IMG/VR virus record: IMGVR_UViG_3300042350_004528
Span: 234,834 to 298,833 of that record
Reading direction: 5' to 3' (one strand)
DNA: 64,000 nucleotides
Part shown: piece by piece, positions 29,052 to 48,415 of the stretch
How positions within the stretch are numbered: position 1 is the first letter of the stretch
Layout: each line of letters starts with the position of its first letter
The notes under the pieces: generated by a model
What the model saw: the letters and a program-made list of their open reading frames with translations, nothing else
Database searches by the model: none
Told to the model about the DNA's origin: nothing
Program-made: the position numbers and the translations under genes

Positions 29052-29129
29052 TGGGGCGAACGATGAGGTTCGAACTCACGACCTCCTGAACCACAATCAG
29101 GCGCTCTAACCAACTGAGCTACGTCCGCC
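29052..29129 (-). tRNA. tRNA-His(GTG) with encoded G-1, C73 and CCA
   Basis: CCTGA-TTGTGGT-TCAGG. Confidence 0.92.
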
Positions 29130-29139
29130 ATGTAATCCC

Positions 29140-29982
29140 CTACCTGTTGGTGGGGATTAAGTTATTTAAATATTCTCTATTTTGAGTAAAGATTGGTGTT
29201 TCGACATCCAATTCCCAAGCGCTTCTGGTGTAAACATCCTTTGGATCAATCACAACCGTATCACGATTGACTTCCGCATTGGCACTTTTACGAACAAACG
29301 TCTTTTCAATTTTTCTGATTATACCACCACGTTTTTCTCTTGGTGAGTAATCATTCCAATTTGTACCAGCCTGAAATATCAATTCTTGCATACCATCGGT
29401 CTTAACCCCATGTAATTGTTTTGGTGAGTATAAACTCTGAGCGACCGATGAAATTGAATTTCTGGTCGCATCTTGTTGTCTCCAGATGAAATAATTCTCA
29501 ACCTCAACTTTTTGTGGGATTTGAAATACCCTGGCATCAAACATAGCCAATTTAGGTTCGCTGGCGTATCTTTTATCCGTCACAGACTTTCTCTCGATAA
29601 CATGTAGATTCTTAATATAACGATCCATTCTCAATTTATTAAAGATGGCTGTTGCCATTGAGGCTGAAACGCTCGCCATTTTCTGTAAGTTATTATCGAA
29701 CCAAGCTTGTGTGCCCTCATCTTCAAAATCGGTGATCAAAATTGAAATCTCATCTGATTGCACATACGCAAACTTAGCACCCATAATGTTTTTACATAGA
29801 TATGCCGCTGTCTCATCCATATCATCAATCAAATCCAAATCAAATGGCCTTCTCAAACCTTTTGTATAGGTGTGAAAAGCCTTACCATCAATTCTGATAA
29901 TGGTGTAACCTCTTCTTGGTAATGAAATACGAGTTCTATCCTCATAGTTCGATTTCATTCTGTCTCCTAATGCGTCTTTCAT
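29140..29982 (-). CDS. thg1: Thg1-like tRNA(His) guanylyltransferase / 3'-5' polymerase
   Basis: RIDGKAFHTYT, YVQSDEIS, FDARVF, WRQQDATRNSIS. Confidence 0.92.
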   Translation of the reverse strand: MKDALGDRMKSNYEDRTRISLPRRGYTIIRIDGKAFHTYTKGLRRPFDLDLIDDMDETAAYLCKNIMGAKFAYVQSDEISILITDFEDEGTQAWFDNNLQKMASVSASMATAIFNKLRMDRYIKNLHVIERKSVTDKRYASEPKLAMFDARVFQIPQKVEVENYFIWRQQDATRNSISSVAQSLYSPKQLHGVKTDGMQELIFQAGTNWNDYSPREKRGGIIRKIEKTFVRKSANAEVNRDTVVIDPKDVYTRSAWELDVETPIFTQNREYLNNLIPTNR

Positions 29983-38701: not shown

Positions 38702-38776
38702 GCGACAATAGTAATAAAAAATGTGGATAAAACAAATAAAAAAAGGGTAAAATATTTTACCCTTTTTAAATTTCTG

Positions 38777-39152
38777 TGGAGTCGGAGGGATTCGAACCCT
38801 CGTCTCGTTTAGCCATTCAATAATTCTCATTCACATGCTTAGTTCATTTTTCTAAACAAACAAAATATTTGTCTTCACTAACCCAGAAGTTCAATAAAAC
38901 TGGAATACCTTTTTTGGAGTTCCCACCTCCCACCTGGCATCTAAGGGTTTTTGCAGTTTTAACTGACAGTTGTTGGCTTACGCCAATTCGTAGTCTGCAA
39001 ACTCAACTGGCTGACCGTTCAACACGATGTTGCCTTCAGCGTCAATGTAGCTTTCGCCATCTGAAATTGTGTATAGGTTATTTAAGTGTTTCCGATACTA
39101 ACACCACATGCAAATTAAAGAACGAATCTACCGATCGATTCCAGTCGACCCC
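38777..39152 (-). ncRNA. ssrA: tmRNA; tag ORF 39058-38978 = GESYIDAEGNIVLNGQPVEFADYELA*
   Basis: 5' GGGGTCGACTGGAATCGA; 3' T-arm GAGGGTTCGAATCCCTC + CGACTCCA with G3:U70. Confidence 0.92.
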
Positions 39153-42257: not shown

Positions 42258-42324
42258 ATTTTTAGTGATTTTTTTTAATTAAAAATTATAAAACCCCCAA
42301 GCTATTAACCTGGGGGTTTTGAAC

Positions 42325-42675
42325 TTAGATACCGTAACGTTCCATCAATCGGCCAACGGTTCTTGCCGATACACCCAAGGCTTCTCCTGTTCTTGTTTTA
42401 ACATAATCGTTTTGTTTCAAGATACGAGAAAAAGTTTTCTTGTTGATAGACGAGATGTATTGTGCACGATTGTACATATTTGTTGGCACAACACGTTCAA
42501 TAACGACTTCACCCTTTCGGTTTTTGGTTACATTATATTCGTAACCAGAGTTGTTATTGGTAATTGCGTTAACGGTGTTAACGACTTCGTTGCGATTGGC
42601 TCCAGAGAGTTTCATCGACTCACCAGCGACCATCGACTTGATGGCGGCTGACAAGGTTTTGTTGGTGTTAGACAT
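42325..42675 (-). CDS. Small protein with C-terminal Fis-type HTH
   Basis: TRTGEALGVSARTVGRLMERYGI. Confidence 0.6.
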   Translation of the reverse strand: MSNTNKTLSAAIKSMVAGESMKLSGANRNEVVNTVNAITNNNSGYEYNVTKNRKGEVVIERVVPTNMYNRAQYISSINKKTFSRILKQNDYVKTRTGEALGVSARTVGRLMERYGI

Positions 42676-42742
42676 AAATAATGATTTTATAAGACAATAA
42701 TAAGAAAGAAAGTTTGAAATACCAAATATTGGTGAAAAAAAG

Positions 42743-42816
42743 TTGGCGGGATGGGACTTGAACCCATGACCTTGACCTTATAAGAGTCCTGCGCTAACCA
42801 ACTGCGCCACCCGCCA
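42743..42816 (-). tRNA. tRNA-Ile(TAT)
   Basis: GGACT-CTTATAA-GGTCA, A73. Confidence 0.85.
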
Positions 42817-42823
42817 GTCGAAT

Positions 42824-42898
42824 TGGAGCGGTAAGACAGAATCGAACTGTCGTCCTCAGCTTGGAAGGCTGATGTAATAGCCACTATACGACTACCGC
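42824..42898 (-). tRNA. tRNA-Gly(TCC), CCA encoded
   Basis: TCAGC-CTTCCAA-GCTGA, U73. Confidence 0.92.
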
Positions 42899-43175
42899 AA
42901 GATGCCTCATTCTGGGGTTTGATTGAGGTCTAGTTACATCGGTTTCTTTCGCTGTTTCAAGAACCTGCCGCACTTCTGCTGGTAAAACCCGTCAACACTA
43001 CTCGGCGGAGATGTGTCGCTCTCCGTTACTCCGACCCCCAGCATTTTAACTATAAAGGCTCATTACCACCCTATGAGCGGATGATTGCTCTCCAGTACAG
43101 TTTTCGGTTACCATCTGGGTATTAACCGTGATCCTTTAGTGAGATCCAAACACTCTGAGTACCCCTTACTCGTTG

Positions 43176-43248
43176 AGCGGTAGACAGGATTCGAACCTGC
43201 GACCCTCACCTTGGCAAGGTGATGCTCTACCAACTGAGCTACTACCGC
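43176..43248 (-). tRNA. tRNA-Gly(GCC)
   Basis: TCACC-TTGCCAA-GGTGA. Confidence 0.92.
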
Positions 43249-43362
43249 TTAAAAGACAGCCCACAACGTCCACATTATACCGTTGGTGGGGAATGACGAC
43301 CAGTCAAGTTGTGGTTCTTACTTTATGTCGCCTGCAACAGGTGCCACCCACTTCTGTCTTAG

Positions 43363-43452
43363 CACTCGACATGGGAATCGAACCCACCACCCTTAGCGCA
43401 CCACTGTTATGGTGATTCGAACACCGCTACTAAGGGCTGACCCCAATCGAGT
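43363..43452 (-). ncRNA. tRNA-like RNA with two T-loop hairpins and no D arm or anticodon
   Basis: ACTCGAT/GTCGAGT acceptor; GGTG-TTCGAAT-CACC and GTGGG-TTCGATT-CCCAT. Confidence 0.6.
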
Positions 43453-43665
43453 AAGTTGGGGAACCTATTTACAAGCTTTTGGTTCCCCGATTGATCAAGT
43501 TATTTAATTATTTTAACCTCAAATAAGGCATTCACATCGCCAATAAAGGGGATCGGCTTTAAGGTTTAACCGCCATAACTCTCAGATACGCTCGTCATGT
43601 GACTCTTTCTCCGTTTATTTTAAGATGCACGGATCCCTCTCTGATGGGAGTACAAAACATCTGCT

Positions 43666-43743
43666 TGGTTGCGGGAACGGGATTCGAACCCGTGTAATTC
43701 GGCTTATGAGACCGAGCTGGAACCAACTCCAGTCCACCCCGCA
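43666..43743 (-). tRNA. tRNA-Met(CAT), atypical, CCA encoded
   Basis: TCGGT-CTCATAA-GCCGA; fMet-like 5' end, extended D-stem. Confidence 0.85.
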
Positions 43744-44285
43744 GTAATGAAAGGCTCTGAATCGTCCCTGCGCCATTCTCAGGAGAGCCTTTCGGTTTTA
43801 AATAGATTCGGCGATCGATTATTCCCACTGATATACCTAAGATTCGTTAGATCATAGTAACCATCCACAATGGGCCTATACTCTTACACTCCGTCCGTAT
43901 TTACTCACCTAATCAAATGCGTCATAGGTATTTCAGATACAGCGTTCAGTGCTACCCTCAGGACTTCTTCACCCTACCCCCATAGTTACGTGGCAGATCT
44001 CGCTCGGAAGAAAAGAGCGTGTATCGTAGAATTGTCCAGTATTTCTACGACTTGTGGATTACAACACGACCAATTAAGGCCCCTTACCCTCTCAATCCAT
44101 AATGAGGGACTCGGTCATACTCGTTCCCAACGTATCCGACTGAACTTCCCCATGTCGGTAAACCCCGTTTATTAGAGGTTATACGAATTTCACTTCTTGT
44201 GTGACCTTCCCCATAGCCTTGGAGCCTTCTAGCCAGGTTCACACACCATAACGGATGAGTACGTCCGTTAATCGTGGGGTCTTTT

Positions 44286-44377
44286 GCTGATTAAAGGGAA
44301 TTGAACCCAATCCTCCAGCCCTGTCCACTTCTATCCTGAAGCAACTAGGGCCAGTGTGCCCATTACACTATAACCAA
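44286..44377 (-). ncRNA. tRNA-like RNA with a 24-nt insert replacing the anticodon loop
   Basis: TTGGTTA/TAATCAG acceptor, GTGT/ACAC D-stem, GGCCCT/AGGGCT stem, GGG-TTCAATT-CCC T-arm. Confidence 0.6.
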
Positions 44378-44426
44378 TCGAGAGTTTCGAACCTCTCAGA
44401 CTCAAGTTAATTACTCTTGAGTTTTG

Positions 44427-44498
44427 TAGCGGGGGTGGGAATCGAACCCACGACCTCCAGGTTATGAGCCTGGCGAGCTACCTCTGCTCTACCCCGCA
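44427..44498 (-). tRNA. tRNA-fMet(CAT)
   Basis: U1xU72 mismatch, A11-U24, CCAGG-CTCATAA-CCTGG. Confidence 0.88.
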
Positions 44499-44504
44499 AT
44501 GTTG

Positions 44505-44576
44505 TACTCCCTACGGGAATCGAACCCGTCTTTTCAGGATGAAAACCTGATGTCCTAACCGATAGACGAAAGGAGC
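44505..44576 (-). tRNA. tRNA-Glu(TTC)
   Basis: TCAGG-TTTTCAT-CCTGA. Confidence 0.92.
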
Positions 44577-44953
44577 GTAAATTGATGATTCGACCACATT
44601 TCTTACCAGAGCGGAACTAAGGGGTCTATTGGTACCGTACCCTCATGCACTCGATTGGGATTGCAGCCCCGTGAGTCTCCCGATGCGCCAGATTGTCTTT
44701 CCTATACTTTCGCTAACCTATCTGTTATTGGGTTCTGGCAGTGTCCCAGTTAGCATACTCCCATAGTACTTTTTCCTCATCAATTCTTTTTTTTTGCCTT
44801 TACCTTTCAAAGACTAAGTAGGTTTAGTTGCGGACTTTCACGTCTTATGCGTCCATAAGACTCCTTCCTCTGAGTGCTTCTCTTTTTACAGTCTTTAAAC
44901 TATCAAGGTACGTTATCTCAGTTTTCAACACAAAACCACTGTGTTAGCAATCG

Positions 44954-45027
44954 CGATCCCGATAGGATTCGAACCTATGACCTACTGCTTAGAAGGCAGT
45001 TGCTCTATCCAGCTGAGCTACGGGATC
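44954..45027 (-). tRNA. tRNA-Arg(TCT)
   Basis: ACTGC-CTTCTAA-GCAGT. Confidence 0.92.
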
Positions 45028-45036
45028 GTAAATTTC

Positions 45037-45098
45037 GGGTTGATCTTTTTAGTCGGATTTACAAGTCTGATTTTTTAAGATTTGCTGAACTCAACCCC
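45037..45098 (-). ncRNA. Stem + TTCAGCAA motif small RNA candidate
   Basis: GGGTTGA/TCAACCC closing stem, TTCAGCAAA, internal CAGACTTGTAAATCC resembling the Tyr anticodon arm with one extra nt. Confidence 0.55.
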
Positions 45099-45116
45099 AA
45101 TAAGTAAATAAAACAC

Positions 45117-45235
45117 AGGATGCGTTTATACGTGCTCTAACCAACTGAGCTATCGACCTCATACGAAGCCGAGTGGGACTCGAACCCACGACCCCGAGGT
45201 TGACATCCTAAAGTTTAATTTGCGGAATGCATCCT
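45117..45235 (-). ncRNA. Circularly permuted tRNA-like RNA (YrlA/Y-RNA-like)
   Basis: AGGATGC/GCATCCT terminal stem + TTCCGCAAA; T-arm precedes D-arm; acceptor stem closed by a GTAT loop. Confidence 0.75.
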
Positions 45236-45249
45236 CTTTGTTTTATTTG

Positions 45250-45321
45250 CGGTCTATGCGGGAATCGAACCCGCCTCACCGCCGTGACAGGGCGGCATCC
45301 TAGCCGATGAACGAATAGACC
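45250..45321 (-). tRNA. tRNA-Asp(GTC)
   Basis: CCGCC-CTGTCAC-GGCGG, G73. Confidence 0.92.
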
Positions 45322-45327
45322 GTTTAG

Positions 45328-45449
45328 AGCCCAGAGCTGGATTCGAACCAGCGCCTTTTTTTTCCATAAAAAATTGTTAGATAGTGATTTGCTGAAATCA
45401 TCCACACTGGATGACTCTTTTTTTAATGCTACCGCTACACCATCTGGGC
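45328..45449 (-). ncRNA. tRNA-like RNA with anticodon arm replaced by a hairpin + TTCAGCAA module
   Basis: GCCCAGA/TCTGGGC acceptor, D-loop-like segment, TCATCCA-GTG-TGGATGA hairpin + TTTCAGCAAA, GCTGG-TTCGAAT-CCAGC. Confidence 0.7.
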
Positions 45450-45453
45450 TTTG

Positions 45454-45527
45454 CTCCCCCGTCAGGGCTCGAACCTGAGACCTACTGATTAACAGTCAGT
45501 TGCTCTAACCAGCTGAGCTACAGAGGA
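45454..45527 (-). tRNA. tRNA-Asn(GTT)
   Basis: ACTGA-CTGTTAA-TCAGT. Confidence 0.92.
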
Positions 45528-45710
45528 ATATTTGATGGTGTCACAACTATATACCATCAGCTACGGAACCCTTCTGTTAATAAGTAAGTAGGAGATTTAA
45601 AAATCTCGTCCGTATCAAATCCACGCCATTGGTTACGTTGTCTCACGACAAGAGGCTTTACCAAGGCAAAGTTTTAATTTTTTCACCAATATGTCAAAGA
45701 ACAATCTTTG

Positions 45711-45783
45711 AGCCACATGACGGGATCGAACCGCCGACCTACTGATTACAAATCAGTTGCTCTACCAGCTGAGCTAATGTGGC
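45711..45783 (-). tRNA. tRNA-Thr(TGT)
   Basis: ACTGA-TTTGTAA-TCAGT. Confidence 0.92.
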
Positions 45784-45788
45784 ATCTG

Positions 45789-45861
45789 TGGTGCGGGGAG
45801 GAATCGAACCTCCGACACAGGGATTTTCAGTCCCTTGCTCTACCAACTGAGCTACCGCACC
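45789..45861 (-). tRNA. tRNA-Phe(GAA)
   Basis: AGGGA-CTGAAAA-TCCCT. Confidence 0.92.
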
Positions 45862-46001
45862 AAGTAAAGATAATGGTTGGATTCCCGTTACACCCAACTC
45901 TGTACTGCTTCTTGAGTTTTACAAGCGCTTGGCAGAGGGAGCTGATTTCTTCGGCCCAAACTCGCTTGTCGACAGCTTATTTGGAGAAACCCATTATCTT
46001 C

Positions 46002-46100
46002 GTAGCGTATGTGGGATTCGAACCTAAACCAACTATTCATGCTTCGTTGGCCACCTGTACACGGGCTCATGACTGCGCCGTGCTCTCCAAGAGTACGCTA
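46002..46100 (-). ncRNA. tRNA-like RNA (acceptor + T-loop, non-canonical core)
   Basis: TAGCGTA/TACGCTA acceptor, GG-TTCGAAT-CC T-loop, internal TCATG/CATGA stem; no 7-nt anticodon loop found. Confidence 0.5.
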
Positions 46101-46334
46101 TGTATTTTAAAAGTTACAATTCATCGGAATGTGTTTGTTTTCCATTAAAAGTAGAGTTTGTATTATTTGCCGAATACATTCCCGAATTGTGGTACAAAAG
46201 TAAGAACAAAATTTTTAACCTGCAAATACTTTTGAAACTTTTTTCATTTTTTTTCAAAGAACTTATTTTAACGCTTGCTCTCGCAATTGTGGTACAAATG
46301 TAAGAACGAAACTTCAAACTCGCAAACTTTCAAC

Positions 46335-46369
46335 AAAAAAAAACCCGAACTTTTGGTTCGGGCTTTCTA
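46335..46369 (-). terminator. Intrinsic terminator of attenuator D
   Basis: GCCCGAAC-CAAAA-GTTCGGGT + long U tract; TAGAAAGCCCG is perfectly complementary to 46401-46411 in leader D. Confidence 0.88.
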
Positions 46370-46391
46370 CTATGGTTTACACAATGAATAA

Positions 46392-46469
46392 TTACACCAA
46401 TAGAAAGCCCGTAGATGAGTCCTCGCCTCTTCCAAAGAATCTATTCGTTGTATTTATCACTCTTTTCAT
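46392..46469 (-). CDS. Leader peptide D (25 aa) MKRVINTTNRFFGRGEDSSTGFLLV
   Basis: 14 of codons 3-17 are read by tRNAs in the 42743-45861 array. Confidence 0.8.
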   Translation of the reverse strand: MKRVINTTNRFFGRGEDSSTGFLLV

Positions 46470-46604
46470 TGAATGTTTTATAAGTTTTGTATAAATATAG
46501 GTAACTTTATAAAAAAGTCAAGTTTTTGAAAAAAAATATTTTTATCTACGATAAATACTTTATTATTGGTTGATATAACTTATATTTAAGTTATATTTTT
46601 TTTA

Positions 46605-47591
46605 ATGAAAAAAGCTTTAATTACTGGAATTACTGGTCAAGACGGGTCTTACTTGGCAGAATTTTTATTATCTAAAAACTATGAAGTACATGGTACTATA
46701 AAAAGAAACTCAATTAATGAAAATAATTTTGAGCGAATAATTCATATTAAAGATAATATTATACTACACTATGCGGATTTAACTGATTTATCTTCATTAT
46801 TATTAGTTTTACAAAAAGTAAAACCAGATGAGGTTTATAATTTAGCGGCACAATCGGACGTTAGAGTATCTTTTGATCAACCAATTTACACAATCCAAGC
46901 AACTGGTGTTGGGACGATTAATTTGTTAGAAGCTATTAGGCAATTAAACATATCGCCAAAAATTTATCAAGCATCTTCATCAGAAATGTTTGGTAATTCG
47001 ATTGATTCTGATGGGTATCAGAGAGAAACGACACCCATGCATCCCGTTTCACCTTATGGGTGTGCTAAAGTATTATCTTATAATATATGTAGAAATTATA
47101 GAAATGCTTATCATATGCATATATCAAATGGTATTCTTTTTAATCACGAGTCTCCTAGAAGAGGTACTAATTTTGTTACAAATAAAGTATGTAAGGAAGC
47201 CGTCAAGATTTATTTAGGGTTATCTAAAGAATTAAGATTAGGTAATTTAAATGCGACAAGGGATTGGGGCCACGCTAAGGATTATGTTAAAGCTATGTGG
47301 TTAATCTTACAACAAGACAAACCAGATGATTTTGTTTGCTCAACAGGTATATCACATTCGGTTAAAGATTTAGTTGAATATGTTTTTAGTAAATTGGGGT
47401 TAGATTGGACTCAATATGTTAAAGAAGATGCTGAGTTTTTACGAACAGAAGAGTTAAACAATTTAAAAGGTGATTGTACAAAATTAAAAATAAAAACTGA
47501 GTGGGCGCCAACATATTCTTTTGAAAAAATGTTAGATGAAATGATTAATTATTGGTTGGTGAGGTACAACAACGTAATCGATACAAAATAA
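46605..47591 (+). CDS. gmd: GDP-mannose 4,6-dehydratase
   Basis: ITGITGQDGSYLA, YNLAAQSDV, YQASSSEMFG, SPYGCAK, FNHESPRR, RDWGHAKDYV. Confidence 0.96.
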   Translation: MKKALITGITGQDGSYLAEFLLSKNYEVHGTIKRNSINENNFERIIHIKDNIILHYADLTDLSSLLLVLQKVKPDEVYNLAAQSDVRVSFDQPIYTIQATGVGTINLLEAIRQLNISPKIYQASSSEMFGNSIDSDGYQRETTPMHPVSPYGCAKVLSYNICRNYRNAYHMHISNGILFNHESPRRGTNFVTNKVCKEAVKIYLGLSKELRLGNLNATRDWGHAKDYVKAMWLILQQDKPDDFVCSTGISHSVKDLVEYVFSKLGLDWTQYVKEDAEFLRTEELNNLKGDCTKLKIKTEWAPTYSFEKMLDEMINYWLVRYNNVIDTK

Positions 47592-47614
47592 CATTTTTAT
47601 AAAATTTTATACAC

Positions 47615-48415
47615 ATGAATTTAGTTGTTGGAAATACTAGTCAATTATTCCCATATTTTAAAGAATATGATCCAAATATACTTGGTGTGTCTTCACGTAA
47701 TTTTAATTACGATGATTTAAAAAAATATAATTTTGATAAAGCGTTTTTGGTATTTGCCGAACAACAAATTCACTTAAACGAATCTGTTGATTTTTTTAGT
47801 AAGACTAATGTTGATTATACATTAGAAGTTATTAATAAATTAAAACAAAATACAAACACAATAATCATTTATTTATCATCCGATATGTGGGATTTATGTG
47901 AAGGTGGTATTACATTAAACACGCCGTTTAAAAACAGAAAAACTTCATATATTATTTCAAAAGAAATGTTAAAAAAAGAAGTTGAGGAGTTAAGGTTAAA
48001 AGAAGGTTTAGATATAAGAATCGTATACCCATTTAATTTTAATTCGCCATACAGAAGGCCAAATTTTGTTTTTTATAAATTTATGGATATAATAATAAAT
48101 AAAAATAAAATCCAAGTTGGTGACTTAGATTTTGAACGCGATATCGTACACCCAAAAATTATTGTGGACAGAAGTTTTAATTGTATTGGTGATGAAATAG
48201 TAGGTTCTGGAGTTTTAACACATGTCAAAACATTTTATTCTGAAATACTTAAACATTTTGGGTTTGATTATAATGAGTATGTTACAGAACATTTTGATAA
48301 TTTTCCAAATGTGAGGAAAACTTTTTACTACGAAACTCAAAATAAATACCTAAATTTATTGGATGATACGATCAAGGATATTGAAAAATACATACACATT
48401 AATACAAAAATATAA
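47615..48415 (+). CDS. NAD-dependent epimerase/dehydratase-like (extended SDR)
   Basis: YxxxK (YIISK), YPFNFNS, RDIVH; follows gmd. Confidence 0.65.
   Translation: MNLVVGNTSQLFPYFKEYDPNILGVSSRNFNYDDLKKYNFDKAFLVFAEQQIHLNESVDFFSKTNVDYTLEVINKLKQNTNTIIIYLSSDMWDLCEGGITLNTPFKNRKTSYIISKEMLKKEVEELRLKEGLDIRIVYPFNFNSPYRRPNFVFYKFMDIIINKNKIQVGDLDFERDIVHPKIIVDRSFNCIGDEIVGSGVLTHVKTFYSEILKHFGFDYNEYVTEHFDNFPNVRKTFYYETQNKYLNLLDDTIKDIEKYIHINTKI

Follow-up and report, generated by a model that had tools for sequence, protein, structure and literature searches.

A 535-nt element in the tRNA array of a jumbo phage (43749..44283, on the − strand, which is that of the tRNAs; limits from the ends of BLAST homology and from alignment A3) most probably belongs to an uncatalogued family of large noncoding RNAs that sit as single copies in jumbo-phage tRNA arrays. 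The element is 402-536 nt long in the other members, and it is present in at least 22 jumbo-phage genomes. It is discrete, with the same edges in every genome beside differing tRNA neighbours. Its fold is conserved and comprises about 20 helices, grouped into a 5' domain, a core, a variable arm and a 3' domain, and two pseudoknots hold the terminal hairpin of the 3' domain. As a real gene in the tRNA-array niche that matches nothing in Rfam 15, it looks like a new counterpart to GOLLD and ROOL.

The window analysed here is the terminal 64 kb (64,000 nucleotides) of the 298,833-bp IMG/VR virus record IMGVR_UViG_3300042350_004528, which CheckV rates as 100% complete and which comes from a jumbo phage of about 30% GC. 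This phage carries 27 tRNAs called by ARAGORN, one tmRNA (full length, 38774-39152, 78.8 bits) and one Thg1-like gene (29140-29982, − strand), which belongs to the Thg1 family of tRNA-His guanylyltransferases and lies immediately upstream of tRNA-His (29052-29128). The densest tRNA array of the phage (42742-45861, − strand) holds the element. An earlier note, made from the sequence of the window alone, had marked positions 43744-44285 as a GC-elevated, hairpin-dense, noncoding block and had proposed that it was either GOLLD or ROOL or else a new class of large structured RNA. The limits given there lie close to the edges defined by homology, as BLAST matches to 20 IMG/VR loci stop at 44283/4 and 43746/50.

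Homologues of the element in other jumbo phages

A first collection, assembled via neighbouring proteins, comprised 82 loci, in which nhmmer and BLAST found no homologue of the block. In the closest syntenic array, that of L003, the individual modules are 86-91% identical to those of the window, but the stretch corresponding to 1,065 nt of the window (43356-44420) is just 171 nt long; other array gaps, unlike the block at that point, were clearly conserved modules. Seen through this synteny-based collection the block was provisionally an orphan insertion, a view overturned by the homologues that a word search brought in. Three metagenome contigs from near-identical strains carry the block at 99% identity and are too similar to be informative on covariation. 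BLAST over 49 whole related records gave no homologue and missed the diverged copy in G009 that is described below, and it is therefore too insensitive here.

An 18-nt loop word from the hairpin at 44051-44023 (P7) led to 20 IMG/VR contigs, each with the whole element at 76-85% identity to the window by BLAST. These 20 records (18 distinct sequences) and the G009 copy make 21 homologous loci beyond the window, and pairwise identity within the family ranges from 66 to 96%, with a median of 74.5%. Exact-word scans of IMG/VR with 18-mers from other hairpins, and further word or pattern scans of viral contigs, returned nothing or chance matches (L084, L092, L093). The sample of about 21 sequences includes several close ones and is phylogenetically non-independent, and because all but one were retrieved via one exact 18-mer, it under-samples the diversity of the family.

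Word scans of 185,579 prokaryote species genomes gave 0 matches, also for a 23-mer that is invariant among close members, and a search of INPHARED phages in distant mode gave tRNA matches only and no homologue of the element. It is thus so far confined to uncultured jumbo phages. The carriers are known from metagenomes only, measure about 200-320 kb and have a GC content of about 30-36%. Every record that was searched whole holds one copy, among them a 100%-complete genome of 293,850 bp and the window's own genome. Searches of the syntenic arrays of the nearest relatives by protein similarity (L002, L003, L088/89), and of the near-complete relatives G039, G042 and G047, turned up no copy, and the element is therefore dispensable for the wider phage group. 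Proteins common to the window phage and the element-bearing phages are only 34-71% identical in amino-acid sequence, which makes the RNA the better conserved feature.

A conserved fold with two pseudoknots

Alignment A3, with 20 rows, displays long invariant runs, an optional insert of about 80 nt and a variable arm. RNAalifold placed 78 pairs on the alignment, 34 of them with compensatory double changes and 98.1% of cells canonical; none of 300 shuffles reached these counts, and slid partners gave 4-12 compensatory pairs. The earlier note had made its proposal depend on covariation, and this is pervasive: in a curated set of 20 helices and 111 pairs (97.3% canonical cells), 55 pairs are compensatory, compared with 11-17 in slid controls, and the pseudoknots covary as well. 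G-U pairs are frequent (UG:19 and GU:20 at single pairs), and their abundance fixes the RNA strand as the − strand, on which all features below are read.

The 5' domain (44199..44279; 98-100% canonical) is made up of P1 (44279-44275/44213-44209), the P2 hairpin (44270-44265/44254-44249), P3 (44244-44240/44203-44199) and the inner hairpin P3a (44235-44233/44222-44220), with two compensatory pairs each in P2 and P3a. An optional Y-shaped insert domain (44131..44185) is present in 8 of the 20 rows of A3, one of them partial, and is missing as a clean gap of about 80 columns in 11 sequences of the same alignment. It is a three-way junction of P4 (44185-44181/44135-44131), P4a (44180-44175/44166-44161) and P4b (44158-44153/44141-44136), and compensatory changes are found in all three arms.

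The core (43976..44108) is the most conserved part, with long invariant runs in A3. It comprises P5 (44108-44104/44091-44087), P6 (44099-44095/44059-44055) enclosing P6a (44081-44078/44071-44068), P7 (44051-44043/44031-44023) with an 11-nt loop, P8 (44019-44016/44004-44001) and P9 (43998-43991/43982-43976), whose loop contains an invariant CGUAACU. Parts of the core are invariant and so say nothing on pairing; compensatory changes do occur in P5 (U-A to C-G) and P6 (A-U to G-C). For these two helices RNAalifold offered a long-range pairing as an alternative, and a scan for covarying stacks favoured the local P5 and P6 hairpins. The variable-length arm P10 (43886..43952; A3 columns 356-424) is long in the window and a short hairpin in five members, and its closing helix (43952-43948/43890-43886) changes from CACU/AGUG to CCCU/GGG among members.

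The 3' domain (43749..43874) was counted on a separate alignment, A5, and contains P11 (43874-43868/43830-43824), P12 (43852-43847/43840-43835), P13 (43793-43784/43758-43749) and P13a (43783-43779/43770-43766). Two pseudoknots engage its terminal hairpin: PK1 forms between the P12 loop (43845-43841) and the internal loop of P13 (43763-43759), and PK2 between the strand 43813-43809 and the apical loop of P13a (43775-43771). The 27 nested pairs of this domain are 99.8% paired and 23 have changes on both sides; none of 500 shuffles reached the observed values, and slid controls gave 3-6. In the covarying-stack scan, all five pairs of PK1 and four of the five of PK2 are compensatory, each pseudoknot with at least 4-5 distinct complementary variants. 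All members reach 110-137 bits with R2, a covariance model built on the 3' domain, which has no match in 17 arrays from protein-level relatives. The window itself, which is in the seed of the model, scores 122.2 bits (E 3.5e-22), and it matches the A3 profile with an nhmmer E of 6e-137.

All six helices that the earlier note had named are present in the sequence, and each coincides with a comparatively supported helix: GAAAGGCTCT/AGAGCCTTTC is P13, TCGTAGAA/TTCTACGA is P7, CCCTC/GAGGG is P5, CCGAC/GTCGG is P4b, GTGTGA/TCACAC is P3 and TAACGGA/TCCGTTA is P2.

A more diverged copy comes from G009, a complete relative of 320,934 bp. R2 matches it at 39.7 bits (E 1.6e-5), and the 5' domain and core adjoin this match (A3 profile, nhmmer E 1.9e-31). 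The G009 copy keeps P5, P6, P9 and nine of nine P7 pairs, with six new P7 pair types, and its P7 loop differs from the one that is invariant in the other 20. Its P12, P13, P13a, PK1 and PK2, read by eye from the sequences, are complementary with new sequence. The existence of such a copy indicates that the word-seeded sample under-represents the family. Roughly 7-13 nt downstream of the G009 copy lies a type-II-tRNA-like locus (L114 ~2330-2612, − strand, roughly G009:C1:288829-289111) in two halves, a 5' acceptor and D-arm, then about 250 nt, then a T-arm and 3' acceptor with CCA. This locus appears to be split by a long insertion, and Rfam finds no tRNA and no group I intron in it.

Rather than one large RNA, the block might be a row of separate small RNA modules or processing hairpins, a reading that would account for several features of the family: array gaps in relatives are mosaics of shuffling 70-210-nt modules, the Y domain and the P10 arm are gained and lost as units, and the strongly supported helices all span at most 100 nt, with PK1, at about 85 nt, the longest supported contact. 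No covarying pair was seen between any two of the main domains (5' domain, core and 3' domain). However, these three domains occur together, in the same order and in single copy, in 21 of 21 complete copies, the G009 copy included (two further copies, cut by contig ends, are outside this count), and no domain was seen alone in 82 other array loci. The homology edges, too, are common to the copies. Finally, GUAACU in the P9 loop is complementary to GGUUAC between P11 and P12, and this invariant pair of 6-mers could connect the core with the 3' domain. The proposed status of the element as one RNA relies on this strict co-linearity and on the invariant complementarity, and we consider a string of separate modules improbable.

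Placement in the tRNA array

In all members with called tRNAs, the element lies inside the tRNA array and on the tRNA strand. The upstream neighbour may be a tRNA for Leu, Ser, Glu or Cys or a tRNA with a CUA anticodon, and the downstream neighbour a tRNA for Phe, Glu, Asp or Met. The distance from the end of P13 to the 5' end of the next tRNA is 5-10 nt in 10 of 18 copies by ARAGORN, and also in L113 by Rfam. No neighbouring protein gene that could be a partner is conserved across the family.

In the window, the element has a tRNA-Met gene on either side, and immediately upstream of it is a tRNA-like element. The downstream tRNA-Met(CAT) (43666..43743, − strand; ARAGORN; 34.8 bits with Rfam, 52 bits with a model built from the phage's own tRNAs) is unusual in its long D-arm and carries an encoded CCA, and its 5' end is 5 nt past the last P13 pair. 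The upstream tRNA-like element (44288..44376, − strand; tRNA model 16 bits, E 5e-4) is degenerate, has an extended anticodon arm and is called by ARAGORN only under intron or low-score options; ahead of it are a hairpin and a T-arm-like minihelix (44379-44420, − strand). In two members (L112 and L101), BLAST homology to the window continues through this tRNA-like element.

A consensus scan for terminator-like sites placed hairpins at 46368-46338 and 42320-42290 that bracket a putative transcription unit (42290..46368, − strand), with a 116-aa ORF (42675-42325, − strand) between the array and the second hairpin. The scan found no terminator-like site inside the block, so that the block is most simply part of the − strand transcript of the array.

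These features bear on whether the element acts in cis, as a terminator, an insulator or a platform for precursor processing, rather than as a trans-acting RNA. Such a role would suit its invariable position within or at the edge of tRNA arrays and the terminator-like shape of P13, which has an A-run and a U-run and is followed by U-rich tracts in several copies (L104, L106, L109, L111 and G009 among them). However, a conserved pseudoknotted structure of about 400-500 nt far exceeds what a terminator needs, the loops of P13 are engaged in covarying pseudoknots, P13 of the window is followed by only three U and then the tRNA, and the neighbouring tRNA differs from genome to genome. We therefore regard a purely cis-acting array element as quite unlikely.

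Several other features of these arrays are of note in their own right. Between tRNA-Glu and tRNA-Arg(TCT) lies another conserved element that is not a tRNA and measures about 206 nt (44580-44785, − strand). Its identity is 85% in L006/8/9/11/12 and 76% in L005; it has a 9-bp closing stem and inner helices with compensatory changes, and it matches neither Rfam nor the tRNA model. Eight of its 49 predicted pairs are compensatory, a count that comes from only three distinct sequences. In an otherwise 99.7%-identical metagenome strain (L085), positions 44580-44912 (333 nt), this element included, are cleanly absent, and natural strains thus differ in the array modules that they carry. A 62-nt module (43294-43355, − strand) is 93.5% identical to L003 6542-6603 and in both phages directly follows the 3' end of a tRNA or tRNA-like element. 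The array transcription unit (42268-46554) is 98.7% identical in metagenome contigs L086/L087, with flanks at only 91-94%, and these contigs are without the sugar-nucleotide genes found at 46605-48415 in the window; the array behaves as a recently exchanged cassette.

Odd tRNA-like sequences are a further feature. Five gap elements on the − strand (45327-45407, 43362-43422, 45164-45238, 45104-45159 and 44288-44376) score 14-28 bits with the own-tRNA model, and some of these are called by ARAGORN only with a 19-38-nt 'intron' in the anticodon arm. Several are 70-87% conserved in relatives and so may be functional odd tRNAs instead of relics. Elsewhere, L036 (6066-6189 and 6284-6400), L037 (5635-5759 and 5854-5970) and L005 (14311-14425) carry tRNAs, significant in Rfam, that measure 115-125 nt and so contain insertions of about 40-50 nt, which is unusual for bacterial phages. 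Tracts with CUA-anticodon (amber-reading) tRNAs and ARAGORN calls with 4-nt anticodons are present in the arrays of element-bearing and related phages, namely in L109 (2506-2580), L111 (6806-6899), L017 (15241-15325) and L037 (8402-8494), and in L109 the CUA-anticodon tRNA directly abuts the 5' end of the element. In one subgroup (L094, L096, L100, L102 and L103), a conserved stop-free stretch of 100-130 codons is found about 100-520 nt upstream of the element on the opposite strand; it could be a noncoding module rather than a gene.

Comparison with known RNA families

We ran cmscan with all 4227 families of Rfam 15 at E<=10, as the earlier note had proposed, both on the block alone and on 43200-45000; only tRNAs were returned, and no family matched within the block. 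At gathering thresholds, the window likewise gave tRNAs only and no family in the block. No family overlapped the element in six other members at E<=5 or in the G009 copy at E<=1.

Searches of the 298,833-bp genome with individual models were equally negative. The ROOL model (RF03087; 574 positions, gathering threshold 99.1 bits) had no match at E<=10 among 10 candidates scored, and it also rang in 0 of 14 control genomes. The GOLLD model (RF02032; conserved 3' region, 416 positions, gathering threshold 150 bits) had none at E<=10 among 44 candidates scored. The part of the earlier proposal that named these two families is thus dropped. The bacterial RNase P models RNaseP_bact_a and RNaseP_bact_b (RF00010 and RF00011), which ring in 11 of the 14 control genomes, found no match in this genome at E<=10, and RF01998 (group-II-D1D4-1) gave no match. 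For a tRNA or tRNA relic (RF00005), the highest score of the own-tRNA model within the block, with filters off, was 6.3 bits (E 0.74). The same model detects degenerate relics in neighbouring gaps; these flank the block, and none is inside it.

In kind, the element nevertheless resembles ROOL and GOLLD, being phage-encoded, tRNA-adjacent and several hundred nucleotides long, with a complex conserved structure that includes pseudoknots. Both are encoded by phages, frequently close to tRNA islands, and both form RNA-only homo-oligomeric cages (10.1101/2024.12.08.627333). ROOL is about 580 nt long and has an elaborate fold with multiple pseudoknots and no known protein partner or function, while GOLLD is a giant ornate RNA first met in lake metagenomes, with tRNAs sometimes inside its locus, and one GOLLD is located downstream of a Met-tRNA (10.1101/2024.12.08.627333). 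Like ROOL, the element is large, pseudoknotted, encoded by phages and near tRNA islands, here as read from sequence; ROOL, however, comes from rumen samples and Lactobacillales (and from prophages as well as phages), whereas the element is found only in metagenomic jumbo phages of about 30-36% GC. Like GOLLD, it is phage-encoded and beside tRNAs, in this case between two tRNA-Met genes, but GOLLD often exceeds 800 nt and has a universally conserved 3' half, whereas the element measures 402-536 nt and has a different domain order.

RNase P RNA (RF00010, RF00011) is of a similar size class, pseudoknotted and tied to tRNA precursors, and a tRNA array would be a sensible place for a phage to encode one; the element, however, lacks a terminal P1 helix between its 5' and 3' ends as well as P4-type conserved sequences. 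T4 offers a simpler comparison. Its 'species 1 and 2' (rnaC and rnaD) are stable non-tRNA RNAs encoded in the T4 tRNA gene cluster, co-transcribed with the phage tRNAs and matured by tRNA-processing enzymes, a route like the one proposed below for the element, but they are simple RNAs the size of a tRNA, no longer than about 120-140 nt.

The shared tRNA-island setting, together with a few short words that by eye recall conserved regions of RNase P, would fit a very diverged member of one of the known large families (GOLLD, ROOL, group I introns or RNase P RNA). Yet the complete set of Rfam families, searched at the permissive threshold given above, is silent on the element, and its ends do not close in a P1-type helix; we find a cryptic relative of this sort very unlikely, a little more so than a cis-acting element. 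In the literature we found no description of this RNA, and an IMG/VR-wide csRNA survey has motifs of at most 151 nt (PMC10690425). What stands of the earlier proposal, then, is the idea that a phage tRNA array holds a large structured RNA, as the conserved multi-domain covarying fold and the array context support, and its alternative of a new class, for which 21 further loci, the covariation, the two pseudoknots, the conserved array context and strand, and the silence of Rfam all argue.

Composition, coding potential and single-sequence folding

The block has a GC content of 0.46-0.48, compared with about 0.30 in flanking coding DNA, and this equals the rest of the array (42800-46100), every gap included. 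The GC elevation described in the earlier note therefore holds against the genome of about 30% GC and not against the array, which is equally GC-rich throughout. Its description of the block as hairpin-dense is borne out for perfect stems of at least 7 bp, of which there are 4 against 0.96 expected (2 of 300 shuffles reach 4), but not for stems of 5-6 bp, which are at chance level. The minimum free energy has a z-score of -0.50 on the array strand, where 30 of 100 shuffles fold equally well, and of -2.47 on the + strand. The single-sequence signal is only weakly above chance, and the convincing evidence is the covariation across homologues, not the hairpin count. As a practical warning, single-sequence folding statistics and synteny-based collection both missed this family, and a word search with a conserved loop found it. 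We detected no repeats or inverted repeats that would define a mobile element.

We found no coding signal on the array strand, in line with the earlier statement that it holds no plausible ORF. ORFs inside the block match nothing in Pfam or PHROG, variable columns lack 3-periodicity (56/57/56 across codon phases), and core indels between homologues measure 1 nt in 40 of 41 cases.

A non-functional spacer of decayed tRNA genes or recombination debris, GC-rich by origin, would be compatible with the unremarkable single-sequence folding, with the degenerate tRNA-like relics that do occur in the array, and with the position of the block in a stretch that is mostly absent from L003. This reading is effectively refuted, as sequence identity of 66-96% is retained among phages whose shared proteins are 34-71% identical, compensatory changes pervade the fold and the tRNA model finds nothing significant in the block. 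A protein encoded on the + strand, for which one could cite a 101-aa ORF (43870-44175) and antisense stop-free stretches of 49-115 codons in all members, is likewise effectively refuted, because the + strand ORFs are without Pfam or PHROG match, the open frame and its length vary among members, indels and codon phases behave as stated above, substitutions are base-pair compensatory, and open frames are what is expected of a G-poor strand.

Discussion

Collectively, our data point to a discrete RNA gene, in single copy and under strong structural constraint, on the tRNA strand of these jumbo-phage arrays. We propose that the element would be transcribed with the tRNAs in the polycistronic precursor of the array and released by the tRNA-processing machinery. 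The RNase P cut at the tRNA 5-10 nt past P13 would then create the 3' end of the element, and P13, with the U-run that follows it in some members, may protect this end or terminate transcription. The pseudoknot-locked P13 might in addition stabilise the RNA, and the GUAACU/GGUUAC contact may join the core and the 3' domain into a single folded RNA. Of this scheme, co-transcription and release by tRNA processing are, in our view, more likely than not.

What the RNA might do is more speculative. A trans-acting role during infection, in translation, in tRNA biology or as an RNA-only particle like those of ROOL and GOLLD, is conceivable by analogy, and we put it forward tentatively. With similar reserve, the element might represent a third independent class of giant ornate phage RNA, an autonomous RNA that would act as an RNA-only particle or as a ribozyme or decoy on tRNA precursors, tRNAs or the ribosome, and whose placement in the array would serve its maturation by the tRNA-processing machinery.

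To our knowledge, very few bacterial or phage RNAs longer than 400 nt have elaborate conserved folds. They include the rRNAs, RNase P, tmRNA, group I and II introns, OLE, GOLLD, ROOL, HEARO and raiA. Each of these has proved informative, and the cages of GOLLD and ROOL are unprecedented and still without known function. The family provides natural variants for structure-function work, with and without the Y domain, with a long or short P10, and in the diverged form of G009. An independent third family in the same niche would make the question of why large phages place giant RNAs in tRNA islands more testable, since with three unrelated folds the features that are shared, such as placement, processing, timing and size, may be separated from those that are specific to one family.
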